A stretch of 63,754 nt of DNA, counting the filler, from Ministeria vibrans ATCC 50519 (lineage: Eukaryota; Protista; Filasterea), in NCBI GenBank assembly GCA_943704425.1. It is 9 parts of 9 records of this genome, joined end to end, with 100 filler letters (N's around TTAATTAATTAA, not from the genome) between each part and the next. Parts side by side here need not be neighbours in the genome. Positions count along the whole stretch, not along the records: positions 1 to 17,283 come from CALSCP010002647.1; 8 more parts are not named here. The stretch is one strand, 5' to 3'. Under the pieces are notes generated by a model that was not told where the DNA came from, made no database searches, and saw only the letters and a program-made list of their open reading frames with translations. Position 1 is the stretch's first letter. Each line of letters starts with the position of its first letter. A program made the position numbers and the translations under genes. Below are positions 1 through 17,283 of this stretch, piece by piece.

Positions 1-152
1 TCGATGCTGGGTACGATTGGGAAGATAGTGGAGAAGTTCAAATGTCGTTTCAGTGGAGAGTCTTATGACCATTATGCGTCGCACTCGGGGGGGCACAGCG
101 CACCACACACCGGTGGCATGGCGTGTGCGGGGTGCGAGGGAGCGGTGATGGT

Positions 153-186
<34 letters not shown>

Positions 187-474
187 CGAGAGAGAGACAG
201 TCCGATCGAAACGATTGTTCTTTAAACTCCTGTCCACTCACCTGATAATGCTCGGGGGATCTAAGGGTGCCTATGCGGACGGGAACGATCAAATAGCAAA
301 AATAATTTATATTATATTTTAGATTTTACTATTTAGATTTTACTTTAATACTTTTTATATTCAATATTAATTTGAGATTGAGATATGTGTCAATATTGTG
401 TGTGAATTGAAATCACACAATTTTCAAAGTCTCATCATTGTTCCAAACAAGTAAACATAAAACAAGTTGTACAA

Positions 475-2534
475 TCATCGACCTCGGCCGCGTCCACCCC
501 TGCCGCCGCCACGTCCACCACCACTACCACGCCCCCTTCCCCCGCCACGACCACCACCACCACCACCACCGCGTCCGCCACCACTTGACCCGTGTCGCTT
601 AGGGGCCGCATCAAGAGCGTCTCCGTCGTCGTCGTCGTCGCCACCCCTGCCGCGTTTCCGACCCCCTCGAGAGTCGGTAAATTCGCGCAATTCCTGCAAA
701 ATACACAAGCCAAGAGGGTGAGTTCACAAAAAAGGCAACAAAAAATAAAACGCAAAGTTGAGCATACGCGTTGGGCATGGCGCTGCGCTTCTTCAACGCG
801 CTCACGCAAGACCATTGCTTCGGCTTCGTTGACTGGGAACTCGGGCATTTTGAGGCCGATGAGTCCCTCAATACGTTGGAAGAGCTCCTAGAGAGAGAAC
901 ACAGTTGTCAAATAAAATGAGCGCCAAAAGACAGAGAGGCAAGACGAAAGTGGGAAGGGGGCGATTCGTACGACGTCGTATTGGCTCAGGATGGTGACAG
1001 AGATGCCGGCACGACCCGCTCGAGCTGTGCGTCCTACACGGTGGATGTAGTCCTTGCTGTGGTTGGGCACGCTGTAGTTGACGACCACGTCGACATGCGG
1101 AATGTCCAGTCCACTGTGCACGGAAGCAAAAGAACAGGCAAAAATAGAATGAGTGGGGGAGGGGGTGGATGGCAAGTGAGGAGCGTGCACTGTTGCGTAC
1201 CGACTGGCAACATCCGTTGCAATGAGAATCGACCGTTGCTGGTCTTTGAACTTGTTGAGCGCGCCCAATCGCTTAGGCTGTGTCATCTGGCCGTGCAGAG
1301 GAATAGCAGACATACCCAGATTGCGCAGCAAATACGCGAGTCTGTGCAGCAGCAAATTGAGAATCATAGAGAAAGAAAAGAGCGACAGTGAGAGGAGGAA
1401 GAAGCACAAGTGGGGTGTGATAGAGTACCGCTGAGCTTCTTTGCAGAGATTGACAAAAATGATAGTGCTCTTGTTGGCGAGTTCTTCGTCGATAAGCAGA
1501 TGGGCAAGGTAAAGATCCTTGTACACGGCCGGCTTGAACACGTACGTCTGCTTCAGCGTCTTCACCGTCCCGTACTTGCTGCTCACTTCCACCTTGGCTG
1601 GGTTCCGCAACGACGCCCGCTGAAGCTTCGCCACCTAAATTACCATCCATAATGCACAGGTGTCATTGTTGATAACACGCAAGGCGACCAGAAATAGAAA
1701 GTAATCAAAATATCGGACCTTGCTTGTCATGGTGGCACTGAAGAGGAAGGTGTTGCGCTCTTTGGGAATGCACTGCAGAATCTTGTTGATTTCCTCTTCA
1801 AACTCCATGTTCAACAGTCGATCGGCTTCGTCCATTACAAGATACTGCGTCGCAAGAGGATGAGCAACAAAGAAGAAGGAAGAACGCAAAGTTGGGCGCA
1901 AATGACTCACTTTGATGGCACGCAAGTGAAACCCTTTGGTGTTCTCGAGATGATCCACGATGCGGCCAGGGGTTGCCACGACAATATGAGGCTTCTTGGC
2001 AAGGGCCACCGCCTGTGACATGTTGTCGATACCGCCCACAATGGTCGCTGTGTGGCGAGAAGGAGGCGTGTGAAAAGAAGCCGGCACACTGATGGCCGAG
2101 CGAATTGTGACATACCACACTTGAGGTTGATGGAGGCCCCGAGCGCTTCAAACTGCTGGCTGATTTGCATCGCCAACTCTCGAGTGGGCGAAAGGACAAG
2201 GGCGTAGAGAGGATGGATCTTGTCGGAGCACAGGAGAGACTGGAAAGAGAGAAGGAAAGAGAGAAGGAAAGGTGAGTGGTGCACCGACGGTCTTCCGTCT
2301 GCTCTTCGCTGGCCCTACGTTGAGAATGGGCAGAACGAACGCAGCCGTTTTGCCACTGCCAGTCTCTGCAAGTCCAATGAGGTCGCGGCCCTGGAGGCCA
2401 AGCGGAATGGCTTCGCTCTGGATGCGCGTGGGTGTCTTGAAGCCAACCGCTTCGCACGCGTCGCACAGCGGCTTGCACAATCCCAACGACTCAAACGTCG
2501 TCGTCACCTCTTGTTCGTCAGGGATATCAGTCAT
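475..2534 (-). CDS. DDX47: DEAD-box rRNA-processing helicase DDX47/RRP3 (multi-exon)
   Basis: Spliced exons give the Q-motif (GFKTPTRIQ), [54 protein letters not shown] and [13 protein letters not shown], ending in an RGG-rich tail. Confidence 0.93.
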
Positions 2535-2662
2535 AGAGAGAAAGGGGAAAAAAAGAGGAGGGTGGCGAGACTACTACGAAAGAAATCAAATGAACTTGAG
2601 AGTTGAGATTTTCACTTTTTACTTTTCAATTTTCACATCATTAATTTTTATTCACTTCATAC

Positions 2663-3705
2663 ATGGCTCGTACGAAACAAACCGCGCGAAAGTCCACAGG
2701 TACTTGGTGTGTCATTCTTGCGTCTCTCTCTGCCCCTTTTTTTTCTTTTCTTTCTTTTCGCTTTTGACGTTATGCAAGCACGAACTTGCCTTGACGCCAT
2801 CTGGTGTGGGGCGTGACTGCACGGGGGGCTTTTGCACACTCTCGGCGGTGACTTTGTGGCAGCGTGCGTTGCGAGGGGACTGAGGGGAGCAGTGAATGAG
2901 CAATGCGAAAACGGTTGTTGGAACGGAGTTGCTCGTTGCGGGAGAATGGCGCGAAGGGCGTGTTGGAGCGGGGTGTGGGGGGGGTTCCCTGCCTGCCCGG
3001 GACATGTGGGGCGCCCCAGCTGCGTCCGTTGCTGCTGTTGGGCAATTCCAACGCACTTTGACACTTTTGACTTTTCTCGGCGACCGAGACGTCCACCTGC
3101 CACACACTGCGTTGGCACTGCAATCGCCATTCGTTGCAGCGAAACACCACTAGACTGCACATGGGCAGATTTTCCATTTTCGAGCAAATGCTCTTTCTCA
3201 AGTTGTGCCTTGACACGTCGCACCTGCTCGCGCTCCGCCACCGCCTCGGANNNNNNNNNNTTTTTTTTTTTTTTTTTTTCTACTTTTCGTTCTTTTTCGT
3301 TTTTGTGAAACCTCTTTCCTGTGTCTCGTGTGTAGGAGGAAAGGCGCCGCGAAAGCAGCTGGCTACCAAGGCTGCACGCAAGTCTGCGCCGAACCAGGCG
3401 GGTGTCAAGAAGCCTCGTAAGTCAATTTAGAGCGAACGCTCAACGACCTTTTCAATGTTGGCGGTCGACCTTCATGTTTCGCAAGAGCCCTGAGAGAAAC
3501 GCTGGAGGGCGGTGAGAGAGGGAGAGAGAGGAGTCAGTGTGTGTGTGTGTGTGTGTGTGTATTCCAGACAGATGGAGAGGGAGGGGAGTAGGAGAGAAAG
3601 GAGAGAGANNNNNNNNNNNNNNNNNNNNNNNNNNNNNNNNNNNNNNNNNNNNNNNNNNNNNNNNNNNNNNNNNNNNNNNNNNNNNNNNNNNNNNNNNNNN
3701 NNNNN

Positions 3706-3757
<52 letters not shown>

Positions 3758-4200
3758 AACACACGTTGAGAAAGTGAGACGCAGAACAGTTTTTTAACAC
3801 TTTATGTATCTCAGATCGATACCGCCCTGGCACAGTTGCTCTGCGTGAGATTCGACGATACCAAAAGAGCACCGAGCTGCTCATCCGCAAGCTGCCCTTC
3901 CAGCGTCTCGTCCGTGAGATCGCTCAGGATTTCAAGACAGACTTGCGATTTCAGTCTGCAGCAGTCGCTGGTATGCCATTACTTTGTACAGTGCATGTAT
4001 TTATGCCAATGCTAACGCTGCCCCCCCTTTTTGTTTGTTGTTGTCTTGCTGTTTTCTCTGCAGCATTGCAAGAAGCGGCCGAGGCGTACCTGGTGGGCTT
4101 GTTTGAGGACACCAACCTGTGCGCCATCCACGCGCGCCGTGTCACGATCATGCCAAAGGACATCCAGCTTGCACGTCGCATCCGCGGCGAGCGCGCTTAA
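2663..4200 (+). CDS. H3: Histone H3, intron-containing variant (4 exons: 2663-2699, 3336-~3416, ~3815-3970, ~4063-4200)
   Basis: [13 protein letters not shown]|[26 protein letters not shown]|[52 protein letters not shown]|[45 protein letters not shown]. Confidence 0.97.
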
Positions 4201-4255
4201 GTCGCTTCAATAAACAACCTTCCCCCAAACCCAACGTGCCTCCTTCGGAAGCACA

Positions 4256-4287
<32 letters not shown>

Positions 4288-4340
4288 AAAGAGTAGAGAA
4301 AGAAAGGAAATGTAGAAAGAAGAGAGTGTTTTCATACAAA

Positions 4341-6468
4341 CTATAGACCGCCATAAAAGCCCCCTGCACCACTGGAGGGTTTGCCCTTGCCTTTGCCTTT
4401 GCGCGTCCATGCTGGCGCTGGCGCACTCGACGGCCCCGCTCCACCGTCATCATCATCGTCATCATCATCGTCGTCGTCACTGTCACTCTCCGACTCGTCC
4501 AAATCCATCTCCTCATACTCATCATCGTCATCATCGTCATCATCATCATCATCGTCGTCGTCGTCGTCATTTCTCGCTGTGTCGTGCCGTGCAGCCCCTC
4601 CACCATGCCCTGCCGTCTTCCAGTGTTGCTGCAGTGCCTCTGCCAGCACTGGGTTGAACATGTTCCCTTCACTTTCTCCCTCCCCCTCCTCCCCTTCCTC
4701 CGCCTCTTCGTCGTCAAAGAAATCATCAATCGCCCAGAACCGTACCGAACTGTCGTGCGAACAGCTTGCCACAAAGCGCTGGTCGTGGCTCATGGCCATG
4801 CGCTCAATAGGAAAGCCTTCATCGTGCTCGCCCAACACTCCCAACAGCTGGTTGGGCAACACATTGCAAACCCTTCAATGGCAAACGCAACAGTGAGGTA
4901 ATAAAGAGTGTTTATGTCTCGGTTCGCATCAACATACCGAATAAGCCCGTCGTGGCAGCCTGTCGCCACAATCGACTCCGTAATCTTCACCATGGAGTCC
5001 ACCGACGACGGATTGCCAATGAGGCGGTCATTCTGATCGCCAAACTCGTCCCAGTTGAAAATGAGAAGTGCGCCACTCTGCGACCCACACACAACCTTCT
5101 TGCCACGGTGCATCAGCGCCACCGACAGCAGCTCGTCCTCCTGATGGTCCGACCGCACCAGCAGTTTCCTTTGGCGCAGATCAAACACCGACAGTGTCCC
5201 GTCACCGCTCGCCGCCAGCAACGTCTTGTGTTCGCGTGCACAAAAATCCGAAATGTAATCCTCGTTGTCGTCAAAGGTCGCAATCATACGCGTTTGTCTC
5301 GTGTCCCACAGCTGTGCCAAACGCACGTCAGCACCTCAACTCTTTTCCCCTTTCATATCTATCCTACCTTGACCACACCACGGTCGTCGCCCGAGGCCAA
5401 TAGAGTGTCGCTTACTCGCAATAGCGTGTTAATGGGATCGCTGAGAAGAGCATGATAAGTGAGACAAGCAAAAATAAAAAAGTTCTCTCTCGCTCACTCT
5501 TACTCGTGTGCTTTGGGAAGACGAAACCCGACGACTCCCGATTCGACGTCGACAACCTGAAGACTTTTATTTGCATTGCCACAAAAGAGAGCTGTGCAGA
5601 GAGAGAAAATGAGGAGTGGTGCACTGCAATGTCCGCACACCACAAGTACAACAGTACGCACAAAGACACACACCGCAAAGCACAAAGATGTACACCACAC
5701 ATATACAACACTGCACAAAAACACAAAGACGTACACCACACATATACAACACTGCACAAAAACACAAAGACGTACACCACACATATACAACACTGCACAA
5801 AGACGCACAACACCACACTCTCACAAAGACACACACCACAAAGCACAAAGACATACACCACACATACAACACTGCACAAAGACGCACAACACCACACTCT
5901 CACAAAGACACACACCACAAAGCACAAAGACGTACACCACACATACAACACTGCACAAAGACGCACAGCACCACACTCTCACAAAGACACACAAAGCACA
6001 AAGACGTACACCACACATATACAACACTGCACAAAGACGCACAACACCACACTCTCACAAAAACACACAAAGCACAAAGACGTACACCACACATACATCA
6101 CTGCACAAAGGACGCACATCTCACAAACACACACACACACACACCTTTGCCATCCAACGAGAACTGCGCCGCTCGACACGCACGTTTCTGCAGTTGAATA
6201 GAATACTGAAGCTGTGGCGGCTGTGCGGCGGCATAGGAATAGCTGTAGAAGGAGAGAGAGGGCGCAAGAGGGTTCGTTTTCGAAGTTGTGCGTCGGGTGT
6301 CTTACACGCAGACTTCGCCGCTGATAAGGCCGGTGGCGATAATGTCTCGCTCCGGATGGAAGGCTAGCGCAAACGGCACCGAGCTCACTACGATGGGGGC
6401 GGGCGGTTCGAGTTCCTACAGCACAACAGGACATGAGGAGAACGCAAGAGAGTGAGCGGTACCGTCAT
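4341..6468 (-). CDS. WDR55: WD40-repeat protein WDR55/JIP5 (multi-exon, acidic C-terminal tail)
   Basis: Exons read LAFHPERDIIATG, FSLDGK|ALFCGNANKSLQVVDVESG, WDTRQ...EDYISDF...LLAASGDGTLSVFDLR...SDHQEDELLS...GKKVVCGSQSG, VASCSHDSSVRFW, and a terminal GGFYGGL. Confidence 0.85.
5655..6143. repeat. CA-rich ~41-bp minisatellite inside a WDR55 intron
   Basis: Tandem variants of cacaaagacgtacaccacacatatacaacactgcacaaa. The flanking WDR55 exons join in frame across it. Confidence 0.85.
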
Positions 6469-6731
6469 AGCGCAAAGGCGGGCAGGGGCGGCCGCGAAGA
6501 GGGTTCACGCTTCAAAGTATGGCGACTGAGTGCCAGAAGAGAAGGAAGTGAGTGAGTGGAATGTGAATGACCAAGTAAGAATGACTTCTCCTTCTCAATT
6601 TCAATTTTCACTTCAGAAAAATAATAATCATCACTTTTTTCTTATTCTTTCTTGCTCGCTGTAGTGATATCGGGCTTGCATATCATTAAGACTCAACATC
6701 CAAGCCGCTTATTAATTAGCATTATCAGTGG

Positions 6732-8007
6732 ATGACTGGCGTTGTAGTGGAAGAAATAGTGTTTTTGGGCACAGGAACGAGTTCGCAAGTGCCAACGGTG
6801 CACTGCCTGACAGCCGATCGGCCGTCATGCACGACATGCGTGCGCTCAATGCAGCCGGGCGATCGCAACAGACGCCGCAACACGTCCCTTGCGCTGAGAA
6901 TACGGCCGGATCATGGTGCTGGTGAGTGCGACGGAAGCGTCAAGGGGACTCGGCGTGACCCGTTGCTGTGTGCTTGCTGTAGACCGCCTGTCGACCATCC
7001 TCATTGACTGTGGCAAGTCCTTTTACGAAGCCGCCATTGCAGTCTTCCCCGAGTGCAAAATACGCTCAATCGAGGGCATTATTTTGACACGTAAGGACAA
7101 TTGCCATAATATACATTAACAACACAAAAATAATTGTTAACCTACTCTCTCTCTTGCAATAGACGAACATGCGTACGCGGCAAGTGGGAACACTCGTACT
7201 AATTAATCTAATTAATATGAGGTACTTTTTTTTATAGAGACGCAGTTTTAGGACTGGATGACCTACGAGACTTTACACTCCATGGACAGGTTCAGGTACG
7301 CTCATGAGTATATTATTCGTATTCAAAGGCCAAGATTGTGATTATGATTCTTATGACGATTGCCAATTTGCCATAGAGTCACATTGATGTTTACCTCACA
7401 AAAACAACCCAAAAAACGGTGCAAGCAACCTTCCCGTATCTGGTCGATGCGTCTCTCTCCACCGGCAGTGGACTGGTGTCCGATCTGCGTTTTCACGTCT
7501 TCGATGAGCACACGCCACTCACTGTCGCCAATCTCGAATTGCTCCCTTTGCCCGTCCCGCACGGTCGAGGCTGCACAAACTTGGGGTTTCGGTTCCAGAA
7601 CGTTGCTTACATTGCCGATTGCGAAGCAGTGCCCGACGATATTGTTGAAAAGGTAGGCGAAATAGGACCAAACCACCGCCTGACACTGGCACCTCATCTT
7701 GTAGATCAAAAACATAGATTTGCTCATTCTAGACTCGCTCAAATTTGAAGCGGACGTCAAGTCGCACTTGTCGTATGGCCAGTCACTCGATGTGGCGAAA
7801 CGCGTCAAGGCAAAGCGGACACTCTTTACAGGAATGTGTCACCTAATGGAGCACTACGCAACGAACGAACGCCTGCGTGAGCACGAAAAGGCAACTGGCC
7901 AATGGATTCGTCTTGCGCACGACGGACAACGAGTTCGCCTTGCCGATGTGGTCTCTGGCGCGGGCGATGCCTTGGGACGCGCGGGAGACACCAATGATCA
8001 AGACTAA
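6732..8007 (+). CDS. Metallo-beta-lactamase-fold hydrolase, PhnP-like (multi-exon, includes a 10-nt exon at ~7163-7172)
   Basis: IVFLGTGTSSQVP, NRRRNTSL and ILIDCGKSFY; the spliced motif LT|HEHA|DAVLGLDDLR; then LPVPHG, AYIADC, SHLSY and TGMCH. Confidence 0.88.
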
Positions 8008-9007
8008 TAATAATAATAAATTTATTCTGAGTAACATCATAAACTTTGTTGTCGGGTTGTTTCACACGTTGGCATTATGTGCGAGTGGTGCCTGATGTGT
8101 GTGTAGCGTAATTTTTATTGGTCTATTTTTAAAGCTTATTGTTACAGAGAGGCTAAACTCTTATTGCATATCTTGCCTTCAAAGATTTTATCTCATTTGT
8201 CCTTGTTGGGGATGGTGGCTCAAATTTGATTTGTGATTACTTTTCCGTTCGCCAGTTTGGCAACCTTAATCAAATTCAATTGTAGGGCAAAGGAAGGGCA
8301 AAGTCACAATTCGCAAAGTATAATAATTATAATTGAATGGAGGTCATACTCAGGAACCACCGCACATCCGTTTTATCGTCTGTGGCGGGCAAACTGTGGC
8401 CCTGTCAAAGTCGAAGAAGCCAGCGAGGTCACTCTCTGTCTGTTTTCTCTTCGTCAATTTCTGNNNNNNCAGGAACCACCGCACATCCGTTTTATCGTCT
8501 GTGGCGGGCAAACTGTGGCCCTGTCAAAGTCGAAGAAGCCAGCGAGGTCACTCTCTGTCTGTTTTCTCTTCGTCAATTTCTGGACATATATATTTTATAA
8601 TAATTATTATTATTATTAATTATTAATATTTTATTCTGTCTTTCATCTGTCTTTTCTTTGGCTCAATTGTCGTTCGTTTGTCGTTCAAACGAAACTTCTA
8701 AGGCATCATGAAAGCAGAGAAAGTCAGTCTGACAGACACAGGCACGAATCACTATCTAGTGAAGTACTGGTACGCCACAATGACCAACGTAAGAAAGATA
8801 TGGAGGAAAGCGTTTAATGAAGTTATACTGAAGTTATACTGATGAATTCATTCGAAACAACTTCGAAACCCCCATCAGCTTCTTCGTTAGCCTCTCAAAG
8901 AGTCGGGGTCGCAATTGCAGCCATACACGCCGCCATACAGGTCCCTTGAGCCGCAGAGCACACTACATCAAACGTCTATAACTTGAAACCTTTCCGTAGT
9001 CAGTCAC

Positions 9008-9841
9008 TTACGTGCGGGTGCACTCGTCCACCAAGCGATCCAGCCAGACCTGTTTTAGCGTCCAGGCCTCGTGCTGTGGCCCCTGGTTGCTCAGTTTCAG
9101 GATCACCTTGAGGCTGTGTGCCAGCGTGCCGACACCATCGTCAGTGATGGAGTTCGGGTTGAAGGGGCCCTGTTGGCGCATGTCGAGGATACCCTCTGTG
9201 AAGCCAAGCAGAGAGAGCAGTTGTTTGATGGACGTGACAATCTCGTGTAGGTGCTGTCCGCCGTCCACGGATAGGTCAACTCGCGCACAATGCCCTTCAA
9301 GCTGCTCTGGGCTCTGAATCATTGCGAGAAAGTGGTCGAGGTGCTCGTATTTGCGGCCGCCCCAGTGCTTGATGAACTCGTTTGTTGGCTCGGCGATAAG
9401 ATAAAACTGCGAGCGCAACAACATCTGAGCCCTCTGCCTGCGGTCGACCTCGTCGGCGTTTCCGCGCTCGATACGCCTGCGGACACCGTCTGGATCCTCG
9501 CTCTTGTGTGTCGCCGCCAGCTGCGCCACGTCCACCATGTAGTGCTCTTGTTCTCCGGCGCGCACGTACAGTGCCCATAGTGCATTGGCCGACTCGCTCT
9601 TGATGCCGCTGGAGCCGTAGACCACTCGGAAGCCGGTCCAGGCGAGCTGTGCAACCAACAGTGGACGGAAACGGTTCTTTGCCGCGTAAGTCTCGGCCAT
9701 GTTGTACACGATCGCGGTGGCGAGAGGGGCCAGCTCGGGGAGTGTCAGCTGGATTGCACCTGTAGCATTGAGTTGGGGTCGCTGTACCGGCACGAGATGG
9801 TCAAATTTCAACACAACAGACACCACGAACACCACACACAC
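9008..9841 (-). pseudogene. Intronless ORF fragment, tentatively the C-terminal region of an origin-binding (UL9-like) helicase family
   Basis: The patterns YNMAETYAAKNRFRPLLVAQLAWTG and RRRIERGNADEVDRRQRAQMLLRSQFY resemble, from memory, the helical tail of giant-virus/mobile-element origin-binding proteins. No helicase motifs are visible. Confidence 0.3.
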
Positions 9842-11223
9842 TCAACTGTACAACCCATACACGTACTGTTCGGATTTATGTTTTCGCAGAAGGCGGCACA
9901 CTGAGAACTTAGAAAAGTAGTGAGCTGTGAGCAGGCCCGCCAGGCCGTTCGATCTTGAGCTCTCAGTCGCCGAGATCACCTCACTTCGCCGCTCTTGCCC
10001 ATGTATTTTTTCTATTCCTTTTGTGCCTTTTTAGCTTGGGCACTTTTCCCCATCTACCTCTTCTAAGAGAAATCAGAAAAAGTGCCCAAGCCGATTTCTC
10101 CTGATGGCAAAATTGTTGGCAAAAAACAACAAAAAACAGGCTCATGACTGACACCACTCAGTCTCTTCCTTTCCCTAGCTTGCTCAAACAGGCAGAGACA
10201 CACACGCACATTCATTCTTTGTTCAATCACACACACATGGACACTGCAATACAGAAGTGTATGCAAAATGTCTCCTGCACTCCACTTTACAAAAAAACAA
10301 CCTAACCCTAACCCATTGTGAAATCTGCAAGTGTTCGCTTCGCCGGCACCGTCTTAATGGGTATCGTGTGTGTGAGGGAAGAGGGTGGAGACTGGGTGGT
10401 GCTTGATGTGACTGTGCGTGTGCACTTGGCCGGTGGGCGCTGCGGAGTGTGTTTTCGGGTGGCGAGAGCGGTTGTGTGGTTACTGCTGTCGCCGTCGAAA
10501 GCAAACGACACGTCGGCCTTTTGAGGTGTGGAAGTAGCTTTTATGGAGGCCGGTGTGACTGAGGTGCTGGTTCTGTCGAGTGAGCGAGCAATTCGTATTC
10601 GACCCTCTCCTTTTCACGATAGTGCTCTGGTGCGGCAACAATATCCAATATCCAATGGGCGAAAGAGAGGGAGAGACATGTCAAAGGGACTCGTAGGCAC
10701 AAGCACAGGTGCCCCACGCCACCCCCATCGCAGACTGCGCGTCTGGTCGCAGACTCGCCCGCGCAAACGATACAGTGTCGCCATCACTTGCTCTGGTCGT
10801 TCTTCGTTCCCAAACACGTCCACACGAATCATGTCCTCACCCGCGTTGAGGCGCAGTCGCACCGGAGCACAACCATCCATAAGAAGTACATTGGTGCATC
10901 GCTGTGTTGCTTGGATCGCACCCCCCGCCAGACTCTCCCGCCACAGTGCCACCATAACCAAGTATCTCACCTCGAGAGATTGGGTGACCAAATGAATTCG
11001 AAGCGAAAGGCAAAGTGGAGGTCAAGAGAACTCGTTAAACTTCCTTCATTGGCGTCAGCAGGGGTTTCTCGCCAAAGAACGATGTCGCATCACCATAAGG
11101 GAGAGATCCGTCTGCGGCAAGGTCCTTGTCGGCGAGCACGGAGACAATGTCGTATCCGTTAATGCCAATCGCTGTGTTGCAAAAACAACAAAAAAACACC
11201 AAGAGAAGGCAATCATTTTCTGC

Positions 11224-12179
11224 TTATTTGATCAGTTTTCTCACGCTAAAACTGCCCGGAGATTTGCCGCCGTAACCAAGCGTTTGCAGAGGGCCTCTCT
11301 TGGCGTAGAGGTCGATGTCACCGTCTGCTGTCAGTGTAAATGGTAGTATCACTGGTTTTGAAGAAACGTATCCGTAAAGAACAAATGCGCTGGAGCTGGA
11401 GCTTAAAGCCATAGAGGCCAGAGAACTGATTCTGAAATTGGTTAAGAGGGTGTCATTTCCGCGAGGAGTCCCATCTGTCGCACTGACAAAACGAATGCAC
11501 ATTGCTGACACGCCACAATAGAACGAGAACGCCAGATGACCCCCGATGAAAAGCGGGGAAAACCCACCACTTCGAACGTAATTCGAGCTCAGAATGCTCA
11601 GAGACCCCATCGTTCCGTCTTCGTTGATAATTCGTGAAGCCAAACCTGTAGCTGGTGGCATGTATGTGTTATCGTATGTCACTGGCCACACAACAAGAGC
11701 ACTACCGTTTAAGAGCCCGAATAGTTCTCGTGTAAACCGAGTTTCCAGTAGCGCCTCGGATATATCGACAGGCTCGGGTAAAATGAGTTGTCCGGTACGT
11801 GTAATTATTTGCCCGTACACGGCACCAAAGAAAGTGTTCTCATATGTCGAAGAATCAAAGAGGTAGCCAATATCTTGGCGAGATTCACTGCCAACAACAA
11901 GAATATTGCCTGAGTTCTCGAACAAATGCGTGCGCGGATCAAATCTTGCCGTTGAAGAACGATTTGTTCTTTGAAATACTTGACTCGATAGACCAACGCG
12001 GAACCCAGTAGTGTCAACAACTTGAGCATATAGACAGCATATTTGGCATCGCCCACTGGTTCCACTCCATTCTCTGTATGCCACTGCAAGCTGCACTGAA
12101 GCAGCGTCTCCTGCTCCCGACCATACGGACACAGCGCCTTCGATCCTGTCGGTGTGAAGTACGACAGGGGCAGGGACAT
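11224..12179 (-). CDS. Hypothetical beta-strand-rich protein, head-to-head with the LRR gene
   Basis: 302-aa open frame with protein-like composition. The overlapping 5' ORF suggests an intron or frameshift. No recognisable motif. Confidence 0.45.
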
Positions 12180-12324
12180 GGGGATTGGGGGAGCCGTGGG
12201 TGGCGAATTGAAGTGATCTTGGCTAGGAGGAGGTTCAGCCAGGTTGATCGAACAAAAACGACCCTTTTCAAAAGAAAACAGTCAGATTAACACCAATCTT
12301 TATCTGTTTCTTTGTCGCCAAAGC

Positions 12325-15300
12325 ATGTCTTCACTACAGGAACGCATTCAAGCCGCGCAGACGTCCCATTTCTTGAACCTGAGGGAGATGGGGCTCAGTT
12401 TACTCCCAGACGAAATTCTTGTTCTTGCTGACACTCTACAGGAATTGCTGTTGACAGACAACCCGCTTCGCGTGCTCCCCAACTGGATCGGACAGTTCAA
12501 GAAGCTCAAGGTATGGGAAGGGGGAGAGAAAGGCCAGGATTTCTCACGAGTTGGCTCGTTTTTTTTCTTCTTTTTCTGGACGAAGCTTCTGGACGTTGGG
12601 AATTGCAACCTCAAAACGCTCCCAACAGCCATTTTAGATTTGCGTGGGCACCTGGAGGAGATTACGTACAGCGGGAATGAGGGATTCTCGCCGTCTCTCA
12701 ACAATCTCTGCGCTAGTAAAGGGAGATTTTTTTGGTTGACGAGAAACTGAAACGCGAATTAATGTGGGGGTGTAGAAGGTTTGAGATAGACTGGATGATT
12801 GCTTCATTTGATTCTAACTCTTTTATCTTGCGCTTCTTGGCGTGGCAATGTCGGGCGACTCAGTTTGTAAGAAGGGAGTTTTTGTACGATTTTGCTAACA
12901 CTCCCAACTTTGCAGATTGTAAGATGTCAAGAATTGAGTGTATATCTGACACCATTTTCGCTCGATTCGATGCTCTTTGCTATTTGGTGTAGGGTGTAAG
13001 TTTGAAGAATGGATGAAAATGGATGGTGACTGATTTGGACTGTGATTTGGACTCTTCTTTGCGTTGTTTTAGTTGGTAAGTTTGAAGAATAGATGGGAAT
13101 GGATGGTGACTGATTTGGACTGTGGTTTGGACTCTTCTTTGCATTGTTTTAGAGGGTAAGTTTGAAGAATAGGTGGAAATGGATGGTGACTGATTTGGAC
13201 TGTGGTTTGGACTCTTCTTTGCATTGTTTTAGGGGGTAAGTTTGAAGAATAGATGGAAATGGATGGTGACTGATATGGACTGTGATTTGGACTCTTCTTT
13301 GCATTGTTTTAGTTGGTAAGTTTGAAGAATAGATGGAAATGGATGGTGACTGATTTGGACTGTGGTTTGGACTCTTCTTTGCATTGTTTTAGTTCGTAAG
13401 TTTGAAGAATAGATGGAAATGGATGGTGACTGATTTGGACTGTGATTTGGACTCTTCTTTGCATTGTTTTAGGGCGTAAGTTTGAAGAATAGATGGAAAT
13501 GGATGGTGACTGATTTGGACTGTGATTTGGACTCTTCTTTGCATTGTTTTAGAATGTAAGTTTGAAGAATAGATGGAAATGGATGGTGACTGATTTGGAC
13601 TGTGATTTGGACTCTTCTTTGCATTGTTTTAGGGGGTAAGTTTGAAGAATAGATGGAAATGGATGGTGACTGATTTGGACTGTGATTTGGACTCTTCTTT
13701 GCATTGTTTTAGGGCGTAAGTTTGAAGAATAGATGGAAATGGATGGTGACTGATTTGGACTGTGATTTGGACTCTTCTTTGCATTGTTTTAGTTGGTAAG
13801 TTTGAAGAATAGATGGAAATGGATGGTGACTGATTTGGACTGTGATTTGGACTCTTCTTTGCGTTGTTTTAGACAGTAAGTTTGAAGAATAGATGGAAAT
13901 GGATGGTGACTGATTTGGACTGTGATTTGGACTCTTCTTTGCATTGTTTTAGGGTGTAAGTTTGAAGAATAGATGGAAATGGATGGTGACTGATTTGGAC
14001 TGTGGTTTGGACTCTTCTTTGCATTGTTTTAGTTGGTAAGTTTGAAGAATAGATGGAAATGGATGGTGACTGATTTGGACTGTGGTTTGGACTCTTCTTT
14101 GCATTGTTTTAGAGGGTAAGTTTGAAGAATAGATGGAAATGGATGGTGACTGATTTGGACTGTGATTTGGACTCTTCTTTGCATTGTTTTAGAGGGTAAG
14201 TTTGAAGAATAGATGGAAATGGATGGTGACTAAATTGGACTGTGGTTTGGACTCTTCTTTGTATTGTTTTAGAATGTAAGTTTGAATAATAGATGGAAAT
14301 GGATGGTGACTGATTTGGACTGTGGTTTGGACTCTTCTTTGTATTGTTTTAGGGGGTAAGTTTGAAGAATAGATGGAAATGGATGGTGACTGATTTGGAC
14401 TGTGATTTGGACTCTTCTTTGCATTGTTTTAGTTGGTAAGTTTGAAGAATAGATGGAAATGGATGGTGACTGATTTGAGNNNNNNNNNNNNNNNNNNNNN
14501 NNNNNNNNNNNNNNNNNNNNNNNNNNNNNNNNNNNNNNNNNNNNNNNNNNNNNNNNNNNNNNNNNNNNNNNNNNNNNATAGATGGAAATGGATGGTGACT
14601 GATTTGGACTGTGATTTGGACTCTTCTTTGCATTGTTTTAGTTGGTAAGTTTGAAGAATAGATGGAAATGGATGGTGACTGATTTGAGCGGGTTGAAGAG
14701 GGTGAAGAGGACGAAGATGACGAAGGGAACGAGAGGAGAGACGACGTGGACCGTCGCTCTGACTGCTCATCGTCACTGTCCGACACTTTGGACCGGACGC
14801 ACGACGACGCCTTTGCAACCGCTCGACAGTCAGTCTATGATGCCATTCTCTTCGAGTGTAGCAGCGGGCTTGCCGTCGACAACGACACACTTCTCGCACG
14901 GCAGGTAGAGAGAGCCGACGGTGAGCCTGTTGTTGTGCTCTTCGTCGACGACAAAACACCTCAGGGAGCCGACGGTGAGGCTGTAGCTGTGCTCGGTGGC
15001 GACGACCAAACACCTCACAGAGCCGACGGCGAGCCTGTGGTTGTGCTCTCCGTCGACGACACACTTTGCGCACGGCAGGTAGAGAGAGCCGACGGTGAGC
15101 CTGTGGTTGTGCTCTCCGTCGACGACAAAACACCTCAGGGAGCCGACGGTGAGGCTGTAGTTGTGCTCGGTGGCGACGACCAAACACCTCACAGAGCCGA
15201 CGGTGAGGCTGTAGTTGTGCTCGGTGGCGACGACCAAACACCTCACAGAGCCGACGGTGAGCCTGTGGTTGTGCTCGGTGGCGACGGCGGCGCTCCCTTG

Positions 15301-15928
15301 TGGACAGTGTGTGTGGACTTCCACACTTGCTCTGTCTCAGTCAGCGTAACTATGCTATTTTCTTCGTAGCCAGCTGATCCGATCGTCTTCTGTGTAGAAC
15401 GACAACTGTACCTACTTCACGCCGTTTCAGCTCAACCAGACAAACGCGGCGAGTGTGGCCTACTGCTGCATCCTGTTCATCTGCTTCTCCTGTGACTGGA
15501 AGGCAGTACCTCTCGGACAGATGCAGTCCTTCTCCGCGTCCCTCACCGACTCGCTGTACGAGCTTGTGCGTCTGCGGTACGGCGAGCACCGGTGTCGTCG
15601 AGCGAGGCTAACCAACCGCATGCTCACGCGGACCGAGTTGCACCCTCACGAGACAGTGGTTGTACGACGCGGTGGTGGAGAGATCGAGTTCTTCGTGCTG
15701 CTGCATGTGGCGATGGAGCTACCTACACTCGAGATAGTCCACCGCACTCGGCACAGACACAAGCGCTACTGCGATCTGCGCACACCCTGGCAATCCATCC
15801 ACTCCATTGGCGTCGAGCATGCGACCAAGACAATCGTTGGCCTGTGCGACAAGAGCTCGGTCCTCGATGCTATGTTTCGTGTGTGGCGCAAGATTGATTG
15901 GCAAATCCGCACTCCAGCCTTTACATAA
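12325..15928 (+). CDS. Subtelomeric LRR protein: LRR N-terminus, microexon-encoded segment, acidic linker, 18-aa repeats and an unknown C-terminal domain (predicted model)
   Basis: Exon 1 (12325-12510) has LNLREMGLSLLPDEI and LQELLLTDNPLRVLPNWIGQFKKLK. Exon 2 (12586-12715) has LLDVGNCNLKTLPTAILDL. The AG-NNN-GT series follows, then an open frame from ~14689/14699 to 15306, and a phase-0 GT..AG intron (15307-15397) joins in frame to the ORF ending at 15928. The LRR part is secure; the downstream joins are inferred. Confidence 0.6.
12993..14688 (+). repeat. 80-bp tandem array, each unit a 77-nt intron-like repeat plus a variable 3-nt microexon
   Basis: Unit GTAAGtttgaagaatagatggaaatggatggtgaCTGATttggactgtgatttggactcttctttgcattgttttAG + NNN. 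There are 18 full units before the N gap, with triplets at 12993+80n. Confidence 0.95.
14905..15290 (+). repeat. Coding tandem repeat (~54 nt, 18 aa, about 7 copies)
   Basis: ADGE[P/A]VVVL[SVDDKTPQG/GGDDQTPHR] units within ORF 14746..15369. Confidence 0.85.
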
Positions 15929-16214
15929 ACACTCTTTTCTCTTGTATTATTCTTTTTCTTGCCTGCACTCTCTCCTACCTTCGCCCTGCTCCAGAATGCG
16001 GCGATGGGCGGCATTGGGCCCAAGGCTTACGTTGTCATTGTGGTGGCTGTGGTTGTACTCCGTAATCTTCCTATCCTTCAAATAAGTCATGCATGGATCG
16101 CTTTGAGAAGTGACGGGTGCGTAAGCGAGTTACCTTCTAAGATTGAACATCAGAGCCAAGTGAGAGGGGTGGCGCAAGAAGACTTTCGTCTGACAAACAC
16201 GCAGAAATCCAAGC

Positions 16215-16710
16215 TGATGGCGAACAGAGATCAGTCTTACTAATGGTTGGCTCACTCGACTGTCCGTTGAGGGGTGTCCAGGGTATCTCTAGGGAAAATC
16301 GAGCACTTCGTCTGGCTAGCAGAAATCAAGTCTTACTGATGGTGGGCTCCCTACTCCGTAGACTGTCTGGGCTGTCCAGCGTGTCTAGGGAAAATCGAGC
16401 ACTTCGTCTGGCTAGCAGAAATCAGTCTTGCTGATGGTTGGCTCACTAACCTGTCCGGGGTGTCCAGCGTGTCTAATGAAAATCGAGCACTTTGTCTGGC
16501 GAGCAGAAATCAAGTCTTACTGATGGTTGGCTCACTCGACTGTCCGGGGTGTCCAGTGTGTCTAGGGAAAATCGAGCACTTCGTCTGGCTAGCAGAAATC
16601 AGTCTTATTGATGGTTGGCTCCCTACTCCGTAGTATGTCCGGGCTGTCCAGCGTGTCTAGGGAAAATCGAGCACTTTGTCTGGCGAACAAAAATCAGTCT
16701 TACTGATGGA
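16215..16710. repeat. Subtelomeric ~90-bp tandem repeat, about 5 copies
   Basis: Recurrent tctagggaaaatcgagcacttcgtctggctagcagaaatcagtcttactgatggttggctc core. Confidence 0.85.
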
Positions 16711-16924
16711 GTGATGGTGCCTAGATATTCTTCTTCTTCTACTTTCCTGTTGTTTTTTTGATGTATTGATCATAATAATTTCGTCTTGAAACGGCCCTGT
16801 AAATCTCGCTTCATCTAAATTCCTTCTTGTTCTTTCTTTTTTTTATCTAAGTACGGAGTATATTGATATATAAAAACTGTTTTAAGGCCTTAGTGGGAAT
16901 GGGGCGACTGGCCGAGGAGTGGAG

Positions 16925-17148
16925 AGGAGTGGGAAGGGGAGATAGGGCTGGGGAGGACCTTCCCTGCTTGAATTTGGGCAGAGGGATTGCGCTCCTTCTC
17001 TGCTCGAATTTGGGCAGAGGGATTGCGCTGGGAAGGGGAGATAGGGCTGGGAAGGGAGATAGGGCTGGGGAGGGAGATAGGGATGGGGAGAGCGATTGCG
17101 CTCGGAAAAGAAGATAGGGCTGCGGAGGACCTTCTCTGCTCGAATTTG
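16925..17148 (+). repeat. G-rich telomere-associated degenerate repeats
   Basis: Repeated gggagatagggctggg and gaatttgggcagagggattgcgct motifs immediately proximal to the TTAGGG tract. Confidence 0.7.
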
Positions 17149-17283
17149 GGGTTAGGGTTAGGGTTAGGGTTAGGGTTAAACGTCTGAATACAATCGTAAA
17201 GTTCATGTCTCGGTTAGGGTTAGGGTTAGGGTTAGGGTTAGGGTTAGGGTTAGGGTTAGGGTTAGGGTTAGGGTTAGGGTTAG
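17149..17283 (+). repeat. Telomeric (TTAGGG)n at the contig end, interrupted by a 33-nt non-telomeric insert
   Basis: Five GGGTTA units at 17149-17178, a spacer at 17179-17211, then a continuous TTAGGG tract at 17212-17283 running into the gap, with the G-strand oriented 5'->3' toward the end. Confidence 0.93.

Follow-up and report, generated by a model that had tools for sequence, protein, structure and literature searches.

Runs of three-nucleotide exons joined in RNA-derived contigs from a gene family of Ministeria vibrans with a leucine-rich repeat motif

The locus described here raises the question of whether three nucleotides between an acceptor AG and a donor GT can be an exon, and whether a gene can consist largely of such exons. 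It lies in a stretch of 63,754 nucleotides (nt) from Ministeria vibrans ATCC 50519 (GenBank assembly GCA_943704425.1), joined from 9 parts of 9 records and referred to below as the window; positions 1–17,283, which contain the locus, come from record CALSCP010002647.1 (contig C2647). After two exons with a leucine-rich repeat (LRR) motif, four AG-NNN-GT triplets lead into a tandem array in which near-identical introns alternate with further triplets. A preliminary description had proposed that this is probably a real gene structure, older than the amplified intron-plus-exon unit. According to the results below, the triplets are genuine three-nucleotide exons that are spliced in RNA.

Sequences from runs X1 (2011), X4 (2025, another study), and X2 were compared over window positions 11000–13160. 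X1 and X4–X6 are labelled "RNA?", and X2 and X3 are DNA runs of 2022. X1 and X4 cover the exons and have nothing over 11292–12021; X2 covers the whole interval. Contigs starting at 12583 are preceded in both X1 and X4 by the end of exon 1 (TTCAAGAAGCTC). One of the X1 contigs, record 4 (223 nt), opens with the last 12 bases of exon 1, intron 1 being removed, matches 12583–12715 with 0 differences, and continues for 78 more letters beyond the end of exon 2, which on direct reading closes with ...CTCTGCGCTA at 12715, the donor GTAAAG starting at 12716. These letters begin AAG TTT ATT GGT TTG AGG GGG TTG TTC GGC. In genome order, these are the window's four lead-in triplets followed by its first six array triplets, and they include the junction string AAG-TTT-ATT-GGT-TTG that had been predicted from the sequence. 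Triplets of other copies are also joined in order, namely ACT GGA TTC CGG GGG CGA CGG AGA for the C73 paralogue in X1 and AAG TTT ACT GGA TTG GGA TTG GGA in X4 for a copy resembling that of C1260. The genome assembly lacks the spliced junction string, even when 3 mismatches are allowed, and DNA run X2 has no joined-triplet form among the matches listed. On these data, splicing is taken as shown.

Partly spliced contigs exist as well, such as ...TTTTAG CTC ATC GTAAGT... and an X4 contig with nine joined triplets between two retained introns, and they suggest that introns are not removed strictly one after another from the 5' end. No microexon skipping appears in the X1 and X4 contigs, though contigs hide rare forms. 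The outcomes named beforehand as speaking against exons, reading through exon 2 to the stop at 12750 or leaving out the triplets, are not the dominant form in RNA contigs.

Direct reading of the sequence reproduces all four motif sites (tgtAG-AAG-GTTTGA, tcAG-TTT-GTAAGA, gcAG-ATT-GTAAGA, and gtAG-GGT-GTAAGT) and the donor at 12716 exactly. GT...AG boundaries are found in 4 of 4 lead-in introns and in all assembled array units; rare GC or variant donors occur in paralogues. Among single array units, variant splice sites (a GCAAG donor, an AAG acceptor, and a GTAAAT donor) were noted at about 4412 on C312 (oriented), about 4967 on L018 (oriented), and about 6250 on L015. The putative branch motifs TCTAAC, GCTAAC, and TCTGAC, all CTRAY-like, are present as described and conserved in paralogues. 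The scan suggested in the preliminary description finds 22 YAG-NNN-GTAAG sites in the window, all on the plus strand and all at the microexon locus, compared with 0.57 expected by chance, and 0 of 200 shuffled sequences reached 22. As for the claim that the intervening sequences are all different, none of them indeed belongs to the homogenised repeat; however, calling them unrelated was slightly too strong, as introns B and D are weakly similar to the array unit (z = 3.0 and 3.15, respectively; p about 0.01) and may therefore be very old, diverged relatives of it.

Because exon 2 ends in phase 1, codons straddle the microexons: each takes its first base from the end of one microexon and its other two from the start of the following one. 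Read in this way, the lead-in gives K-V-Y-W in the window and K-V-F-W, K-V-Y-W, or R-V-Y-W in other copies, the codon differences between copies being synonymous or conservative (GTT/GTC, TTT/TTC, and TAT/TAC, with AAG/GAG in microexon 1). Microexon 1 is AAG in 7 of the 8 aligned copies (GAG in C1260) and also in C1237. In the paralogues, microexon 2 is TTT or TCT, which yields GTT or GTC (Val); microexon 3 is ATT, TCT, TTT, or ACT, which yields TAT, TTC, TTT, or TAC (Tyr or Phe); and microexon 4 is GGN in all of them.

The introns around these exons behave differently. Two families of copies, with 77-nt and 85/86-nt array introns, are 78–95% identical in exons 1 and 2 but 43–57% identical in lead-in introns B–D; intron C in particular is 84–90% identical within the 77-nt family and about 45–57% identical to its counterparts in the 85/86-nt family. 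Paralogues keep the unusual donor of intron B as GTTTGA, GTTCGT, or GTTTGT. The most divergent paralogue, C1237, has 58% identity in exon 1, repeat introns of about 90 nt, and quite different lead-in introns, yet its lead-in still reads AAG, TCT, TTT, GGT (K-V-F-W). Since the K/R-V-Y/F-W lead-in is kept even where introns are unalignable, the architecture is older than any one repeat. The same four microexons in the same position and phase thus bear out the earlier proposal of an age greater than that of the amplified unit. The three-nucleotide exon structure predates the split between the intron families, and it is constrained as coding sequence.

The frame continues through the arrays and beyond them. 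Models of three complete paralogues, spliced in silico, have an open frame that runs from the ATG via 13, 43, and 45 microexons into the downstream exons, with a P-loop GxxxxGKT in frame. Downstream of the arrays stands a conserved tail of one or two TTG microexons between unique introns, followed by an exon that gives V-(V)-D-R/H-A-Q/R-W-K. Intact arrays contain 0 phase-1 stops, whereas shuffling the order of the triplets gives an expectation of 4.6 (P = 0.003). The sole phase-1 stop belongs to the 5'-truncated copy on C312, and phase 2 has 13 stops, as chance predicts.

The genome assembly surveyed for further copies comprises 29.7 Mb in 2860 contigs, and exon 1 was located on 11 of them. 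In members of the family, two LRR exons are followed by four lead-in microexons, next by an array of 3-nt exons and by tail microexons, and finally by either a Roc-COR-like or a coiled-coil-kinase module. The 77-nt unit is found on C2647 (the window), C73, C915, C43, and C2596; units of 85–86 nt, 72–77% identical to it, are found on C1600, C1049, C1260, C312, C2854, and at the end of C73; and C1237 has the third array-intron family, of about 90 nt. An intron core, GTGACTGATTTGGACTGTG, is common to the 77- and 85/86-nt families and has 181 matches in the genome; the 100 that were listed fall, simple repeats aside, within loci of this family. Chains of three YAG-NNN-GTRWG sites with intron-like spacing, outside simple GT/GA repeats, occur only in this family among the matches listed (100 of 179). 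The copies on C312 and C1600 are fragments, truncated at the 5' and 3' end, respectively. On C2788, a family member begins about 1.5 kb from a (CCCTAA)6 telomere-like run (71–106), and thus at least two family copies are telomere-adjacent.

Arrays often stop at contig ends or N gaps and are therefore under-assembled. In DNA run X2, k-mer depth summed over array units at 12971–13160 is about 113,000–274,000, compared with about 139 over unique sequence. Although such a sum is not itself a copy number, it hints at roughly 10^3 array units genome-wide, against about 180 assembled.

Regarding the downstream modules, the array is followed on C73, C1049, C1260, and C312 by a GTPase-like exon (P-loop GxxxxGKT, DxxG, and THLD) and a large open reading frame (ORF), whose nearest Atlas clusters carry COR-A/Roc (0.96). 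Pfam Roc was reported for 4 of 9 relatives, with a best E-value of 2.9e-4, below the curated cut-off, and the best PDB match is the LRRK2 Roc domain at a sub-threshold E-value of 0.12. Exon 1 matches Pfam LRR_14 with an E-value of 0.0023 and 17 bits, against a cut-off of 40; the pattern LxxLxLxxNxLxxLP is visible in it. On C915, C43, and C2121 the array is followed by a coiled coil, and after it by a protein kinase in C915 (Pkinase, E = 2.6e-19); downstream of the coiled coil, C43 and C2121 were interrupted by gaps or their reading stopped short of a kinase.

Relatives of the Roc-COR-like ORF are limited to 8 ENA metagenome proteins. Two metagenome contigs that were inspected (ERZ23497376) are 61–63% identical in this ORF and have WD40 repeats upstream of the P-loop, roughly one per exon, with no LRR plus microexon array. 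A light-harvesting gene was looked for and none was found, and the organism is probably non-photosynthetic. For the kinase-type ORF, the protein collection searched contains no relatives, and metagenome scans for the intron core and exon 1 returned nothing except one spurious bacterial match.

Homogeneous introns and variable triplets stand side by side in these arrays. Across eight arrays, diversity (pi) ranges over 0.008–0.042 in introns and 0.59–0.77 in triplets; the values for the window array are 0.024 and 0.66, respectively. In the 18 complete units of the window, the triplet positions are nearly random, whereas the 77 intron positions vary at 11 columns, mostly as singletons; Tandem Repeats Finder (TRF) reports a period of 80 with 95% matches. 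The rise in diversity is limited to the three exon positions, and adjacent intron positions that are not needed for splicing are invariant. A neutral "conversion gradient" as the origin of triplet diversity was rejected, as the rise affects those three positions only. We infer that the contrast is caused by concerted evolution of the introns combined with protein selection on the triplets.

Concerted evolution appears to act between loci as well, because the 77-nt family is 90–98% alike across contigs and copy C73b is a mosaic, its 5' part being 92–99% like the window and its lead-in being that of the 85-nt family. The mosaic points to recombination between family members near the border of exon 2 and intron A. 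When C73 is oriented and positions 6262–7252 are compared with window 12217–12995, near-identity extends over the promoter, exon 1, intron 1 (99%), and exon 2, and from intron A onwards the sequence is of the 85-nt family. The segment encoded by the arrays is wholly different between paralogues, and its abundant residues are G, V, W (10.5%), A, R, and Y. Its composition in part follows splice-site preference, since a G at the last exon base becomes the first base of a codon. The C1260 copy of organism A and a transcript of organism B have eight consecutive triplets in common, with a single base different.

On this evidence, the triplets at 12776–12995 are very probably constitutively spliced 3-nt exons of a protein-coding gene that lead into an array of 77-nt introns and 3-nt exons. 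Short introns would be recognised singly (intron definition), with strong GTAAGT donors and T-rich ...TAG acceptors making up for exons too short for exon definition. The array introns would evolve in concert via unequal exchange or gene conversion, within and between loci, while selection on the protein would keep the triplets different. With exactly one codon per added unit, an array could lengthen, shorten, or recombine and still leave the frame intact. The outcome would be a linker or recognition segment that evolves rapidly within candidate receptor-like signalling proteins, and it is such a function that we infer for the W/G/V-rich segment.

Several points weigh against this explanation. 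The RNA label of X1 and X4 is a guess, and the material consists of contigs, not reads, in which rare isoforms, transcript ends, and expression level are invisible; in X1 record 4, the agreement with the window's triplets covers the first 30 of the 78 letters past exon 2. The translation of the array segment is a prediction from sequence, and phase 0 is likewise stop-free, which triplet composition largely explains. The Roc-COR and LRR assignments are below curated thresholds, and concerted evolution with protein selection is only a proposed cause of the contrast between intron and triplet diversity. Finally, the window copy has neither tail nor downstream module, would meet a stop two codons past the array, and may give no useful protein.

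Other explanations have to account for the same data. A tandem 80-nt repeat 2.5 kb from a telomere, with copies on many contigs, often at ends and gaps, and with some RNA contigs (X1 record 7) that cover introns A–C unspliced, is what one would see if the array were a simple subtelomeric satellite with incidental AG...GT, the triplets a hypervariable spacer, and exon 2 read through to the stop at 12750. Such a satellite is highly improbable, given that fully spliced contigs come from two independent studies, that the arrays are always flanked by the same coding modules, and that lead-in and tail microexons are conserved in a fixed phase with synonymous changes, no phase-1 stops being found in intact copies. 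Somewhat less improbable, though still hard to reconcile with the data, is that the array is spliced but its product immaterial, either as a "selfish" intron-plus-codon unit tolerated in a disordered linker or, in copies such as that of the window, as a non-coding RNA, with neutral triplets. The truncation of the window copy and several others (C312, C1600) agrees with this, as do the amino-acid make-up of the segment, which tracks splice-site preferences (G-initial codons), and the fact that no known domain is assigned to the segment, which entered no protein search. However, neutrality cannot give a 15- to 80-fold jump in diversity at exactly three positions next to intron positions that are invariant although dispensable for splicing. 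The avoidance of phase-1 stops in intact copies and the run of triplets common to organisms A and B also argue for a product that matters.

The introns might alternatively be the functional product, e.g., a cluster of intron-encoded small RNAs similar to SNORD115/116, with the microexons being incidental. Near-identical tandem introns with tiny exons do recall snoRNA host arrays, and the core is conserved across the 77- and 85/86-nt families; yet the arrays stand inside an ORF that links conserved protein modules, Rfam gives no match at E<=1, and folding energy is not in excess (z from -1.1 to +0.4). A structured-RNA reading was rejected on the last two grounds, the folding result covering both array units and lead-in introns, and functional introns are the least credible explanation considered. 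Transposon-like "introner insertion at every codon" was rejected too, as there are no target-site duplications and no common proto-splice context, and the introns are limited to one family among the matches listed.

An extension of constitutive splicing in a coding gene is that the arrays form a "single-codon cassette" system in the germline, which would generate diversity in LRR-Roc-COR and LRR-kinase proteins. This is a tentative idea, and we regard it as rather doubtful. Each gene would hold dozens of one-codon exons, perhaps a hundred or more given the collapsed assembly, between interchangeable introns. Unequal crossing-over among paralogues or alleles could then rewrite a segment of a receptor-like protein codon by codon and in frame, and further diversity might come from donors that pair at random with any later acceptor.

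The literature searched for arrays of 3-nt or single-codon exons, tandem or homogenised introns, and ROCO proteins with microexons held no account of this kind of gene. The micro-exon genes (MEGs) of Schistosoma reportedly have symmetric exons of 6–36 nt and variable products, exon skipping is said to be a documented source of diversity, and the proteins are said to be secreted. In both cases most of the coding sequence consists of short symmetric exons whose lengths are multiples of three, so that a change in exon number keeps the frame. In contrast to MEGs, whose introns are not homogenised tandem copies, the exons in Ministeria are 3 nt long and included in genome order, and the host proteins are of the intracellular LRR/Roc-COR/kinase type. 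Recursive splice sites, or ratchet points (Drosophila Ubx, long introns), juxtapose 3' and 5' splice sites around a 0-nt exon. They also place a strong GTAAGT donor almost immediately after a Y-rich ...AG acceptor; because a juxtaposed acceptor and donor cannot be occupied simultaneously, stepwise intron removal is expected. However, recursive sites remove one long intron and leave no exon, while here 3 coding nucleotides are kept per step.

In brown algae, LRR-ROCO candidate immune receptors have tandem symmetric exons that duplicate and shuffle, which was proposed to diversify recognition (PMC3341825, PMC11378527). A variable region made of tandem symmetric exons is common to both systems, and the LRR plus Roc-COR architecture, putative in Ministeria, would be shared as well. 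Each algal exon, however, encodes a whole LRR motif and the LRR domain is variable; in Ministeria a unit amounts to a single codon, and what varies is the segment that separates the LRR from the Roc-COR-like or kinase module. Spider silk genes (flagelliform and MaSp spidroins) also consist of iterated intron-exon units with near-identical introns, which are homogenised by concerted evolution and thought to promote unequal crossing-over (PMC9779670); their long exon modules are homogenised with the introns, whereas the 3-nt exons stay maximally different. Introners, or introner-like elements (ILEs), form near-identical intron families that are scattered over unrelated genes by the hundred, and stable structures are predicted for fungal ILEs (PMC3609843, PMC3879977, PMC4540971). 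While both are families of near-identical spliceosomal introns within one genome, the array introns are in tandem, belong to one gene family only among the matches listed, and show no excess structure (z of +0.41 for the 77-nt unit and -0.38 for the 85-nt unit). Head-to-tail repeats are shared with satellite DNA, from which the array units differ by splicing and an open frame. The family is therefore classified as an extreme new variant of microexon and tandem-exon gene architecture, outside each of the systems named.

As for the window copy itself (Table 1), its 5' end is transcribed and spliced, but a subtelomeric rearrangement has truncated it on the 3' side, where tail and enzymatic module are missing, and it may be a gene fragment. 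The piece closes with (TTAGGG)n and the locus is thus subtelomeric, the copy being cut at about 14687, 2.5 kb from the telomere. If ...TTTGAG is used as an acceptor, a phase-1 stop follows at 14694–96. One X1 contig reads TTG AGG AGG AAT GGG TTG ACA GGT and then GTAAGT, which is two triplets beyond those assembled after 14433. X1 and X4 contigs that match from about 12289 carry unrelated upstream sequence (342 nt in X1 record 2), which could be a spliced 5' leader exon or the divergent upstream region of a paralogue.

Table 1. Features of the microexon locus and its surroundings, in window coordinates
Feature	Position	Strand	Description
Exon 1	12325..12510	+	ATG, 62 codons, LRR motif LxxLxLxxNxLxxLP; ORF, paralogue alignment, cover by RNA-derived contigs
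Intron 1	12511..12585	+	75 nt, GTATGG...GAAG; spliced out in RNA contigs
Exon 2	12586..12715	+	130 nt, phase 1 at end; frame from ATG and LRR motif
Lead-in intron A	12716..12775	+	60 nt, GTAAAG...GTAG; missing from X1 record 4
Microexon 1, AAG	12776..12778	+	first 3 letters past 12715 in X1 record 4
Lead-in intron B	12779..12863	+	85 nt, unusual donor GTTTGA, branch-like TCTAAC; missing from spliced contig
Microexon 2, TTT	12864..12866	+	joined in X1 record 4
Lead-in intron C	12867..12915	+	49 nt, GCTAAC; missing from spliced contig
Microexon 3, ATT	12916..12918	+	joined in X1 record 4
Lead-in intron D	12919..12992	+	74 nt, TCTGAC; missing from spliced contig
Microexon 4, GGT	12993..12995	+	with preceding T gives TGG (Trp); joined in X1 record 4
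Array of 80-nt periods (77-nt intron GTAAGT...TTTTAG plus 3-nt exon)	12996..14479	+	18.5 assembled periods, ends at assembly gap
Assembly gap (N) concealing more units	14480..14577	.	X1 contig with at least two extra triplets
Unit end, last microexon TTG (14642–44), then unit cut after 42 nt	14578..14686	+	
Rearrangement junction (about 14687) and inverted copy of dispersed element	14687..16200	+	matches on C43, C2596, C312, C2362, and others
Telomere repeats (TTAGGG)n	17149..17283	+	end of piece

The dispersed element beyond the junction is 86–97% identical over more than 10 contigs, including C43, C2596, C312, C2362, C2043, C269, C2178, and C654. It is found near the gene at four family loci, and at C43, C2596, and C2362 it lies upstream and in the opposite orientation to the gene. 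In the window it holds a 54-nt coding-like tandem repeat (14911–15286) and an ORF of 157 amino acids (15455–15928). The telomere tract is broken up into (GGGTTA)5, about 33 nt of unique sequence, and (GGTTAG)12. On the minus strand, positions 10617–10991 carry a fragment of an ORF that matches the C-terminal portion of the Roc-COR-like ORF at 51% identity (E = 1e-33). This COR-like fragment sits 1.3 kb upstream of exon 1 with no Roc region or array remnant beside it, and the locus is therefore a patchwork of family fragments. A simple inversion joining the fragment to the LRR-plus-array part was rejected, as no Roc, tail, or array remnant lies between them. Other tandem repeats in the window are a CA-rich 79-nt repeat at 5659–6118 (5.8 copies), a perfect 119-nt duplication at 8351–8582, and a repeat of 89–95 nt at 16218–16709 (about 5 copies), near the chromosome end.

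A lone exon of 3 nt is a known rarity. Series of 13 to 45 or more such exons in direct succession, joined in RNA, appear however to be without precedent in the literature searched. Such arrays set a practical lower limit of exon size in bulk and would force intron-definition splicing with overlapping splice-site footprints. As exons of 3 nt are invisible to gene finders and spliced aligners, similar genes elsewhere may be missed. The arrays also offer a clean natural system in which concerted evolution of introns can be set against selection on exons. If the arrays do act as single-codon cassettes, they would represent exon shuffling at its physical limit in a unicellular eukaryote, with a spliceosome that routinely processes tens of successive exons too short for exon definition or two-site occupancy. 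For Ministeria, they are a candidate route by which LRR-Roc-COR and LRR-kinase proteins could diversify fast and in frame; members of this class have been proposed to serve as immune receptors in other protists and in algae.

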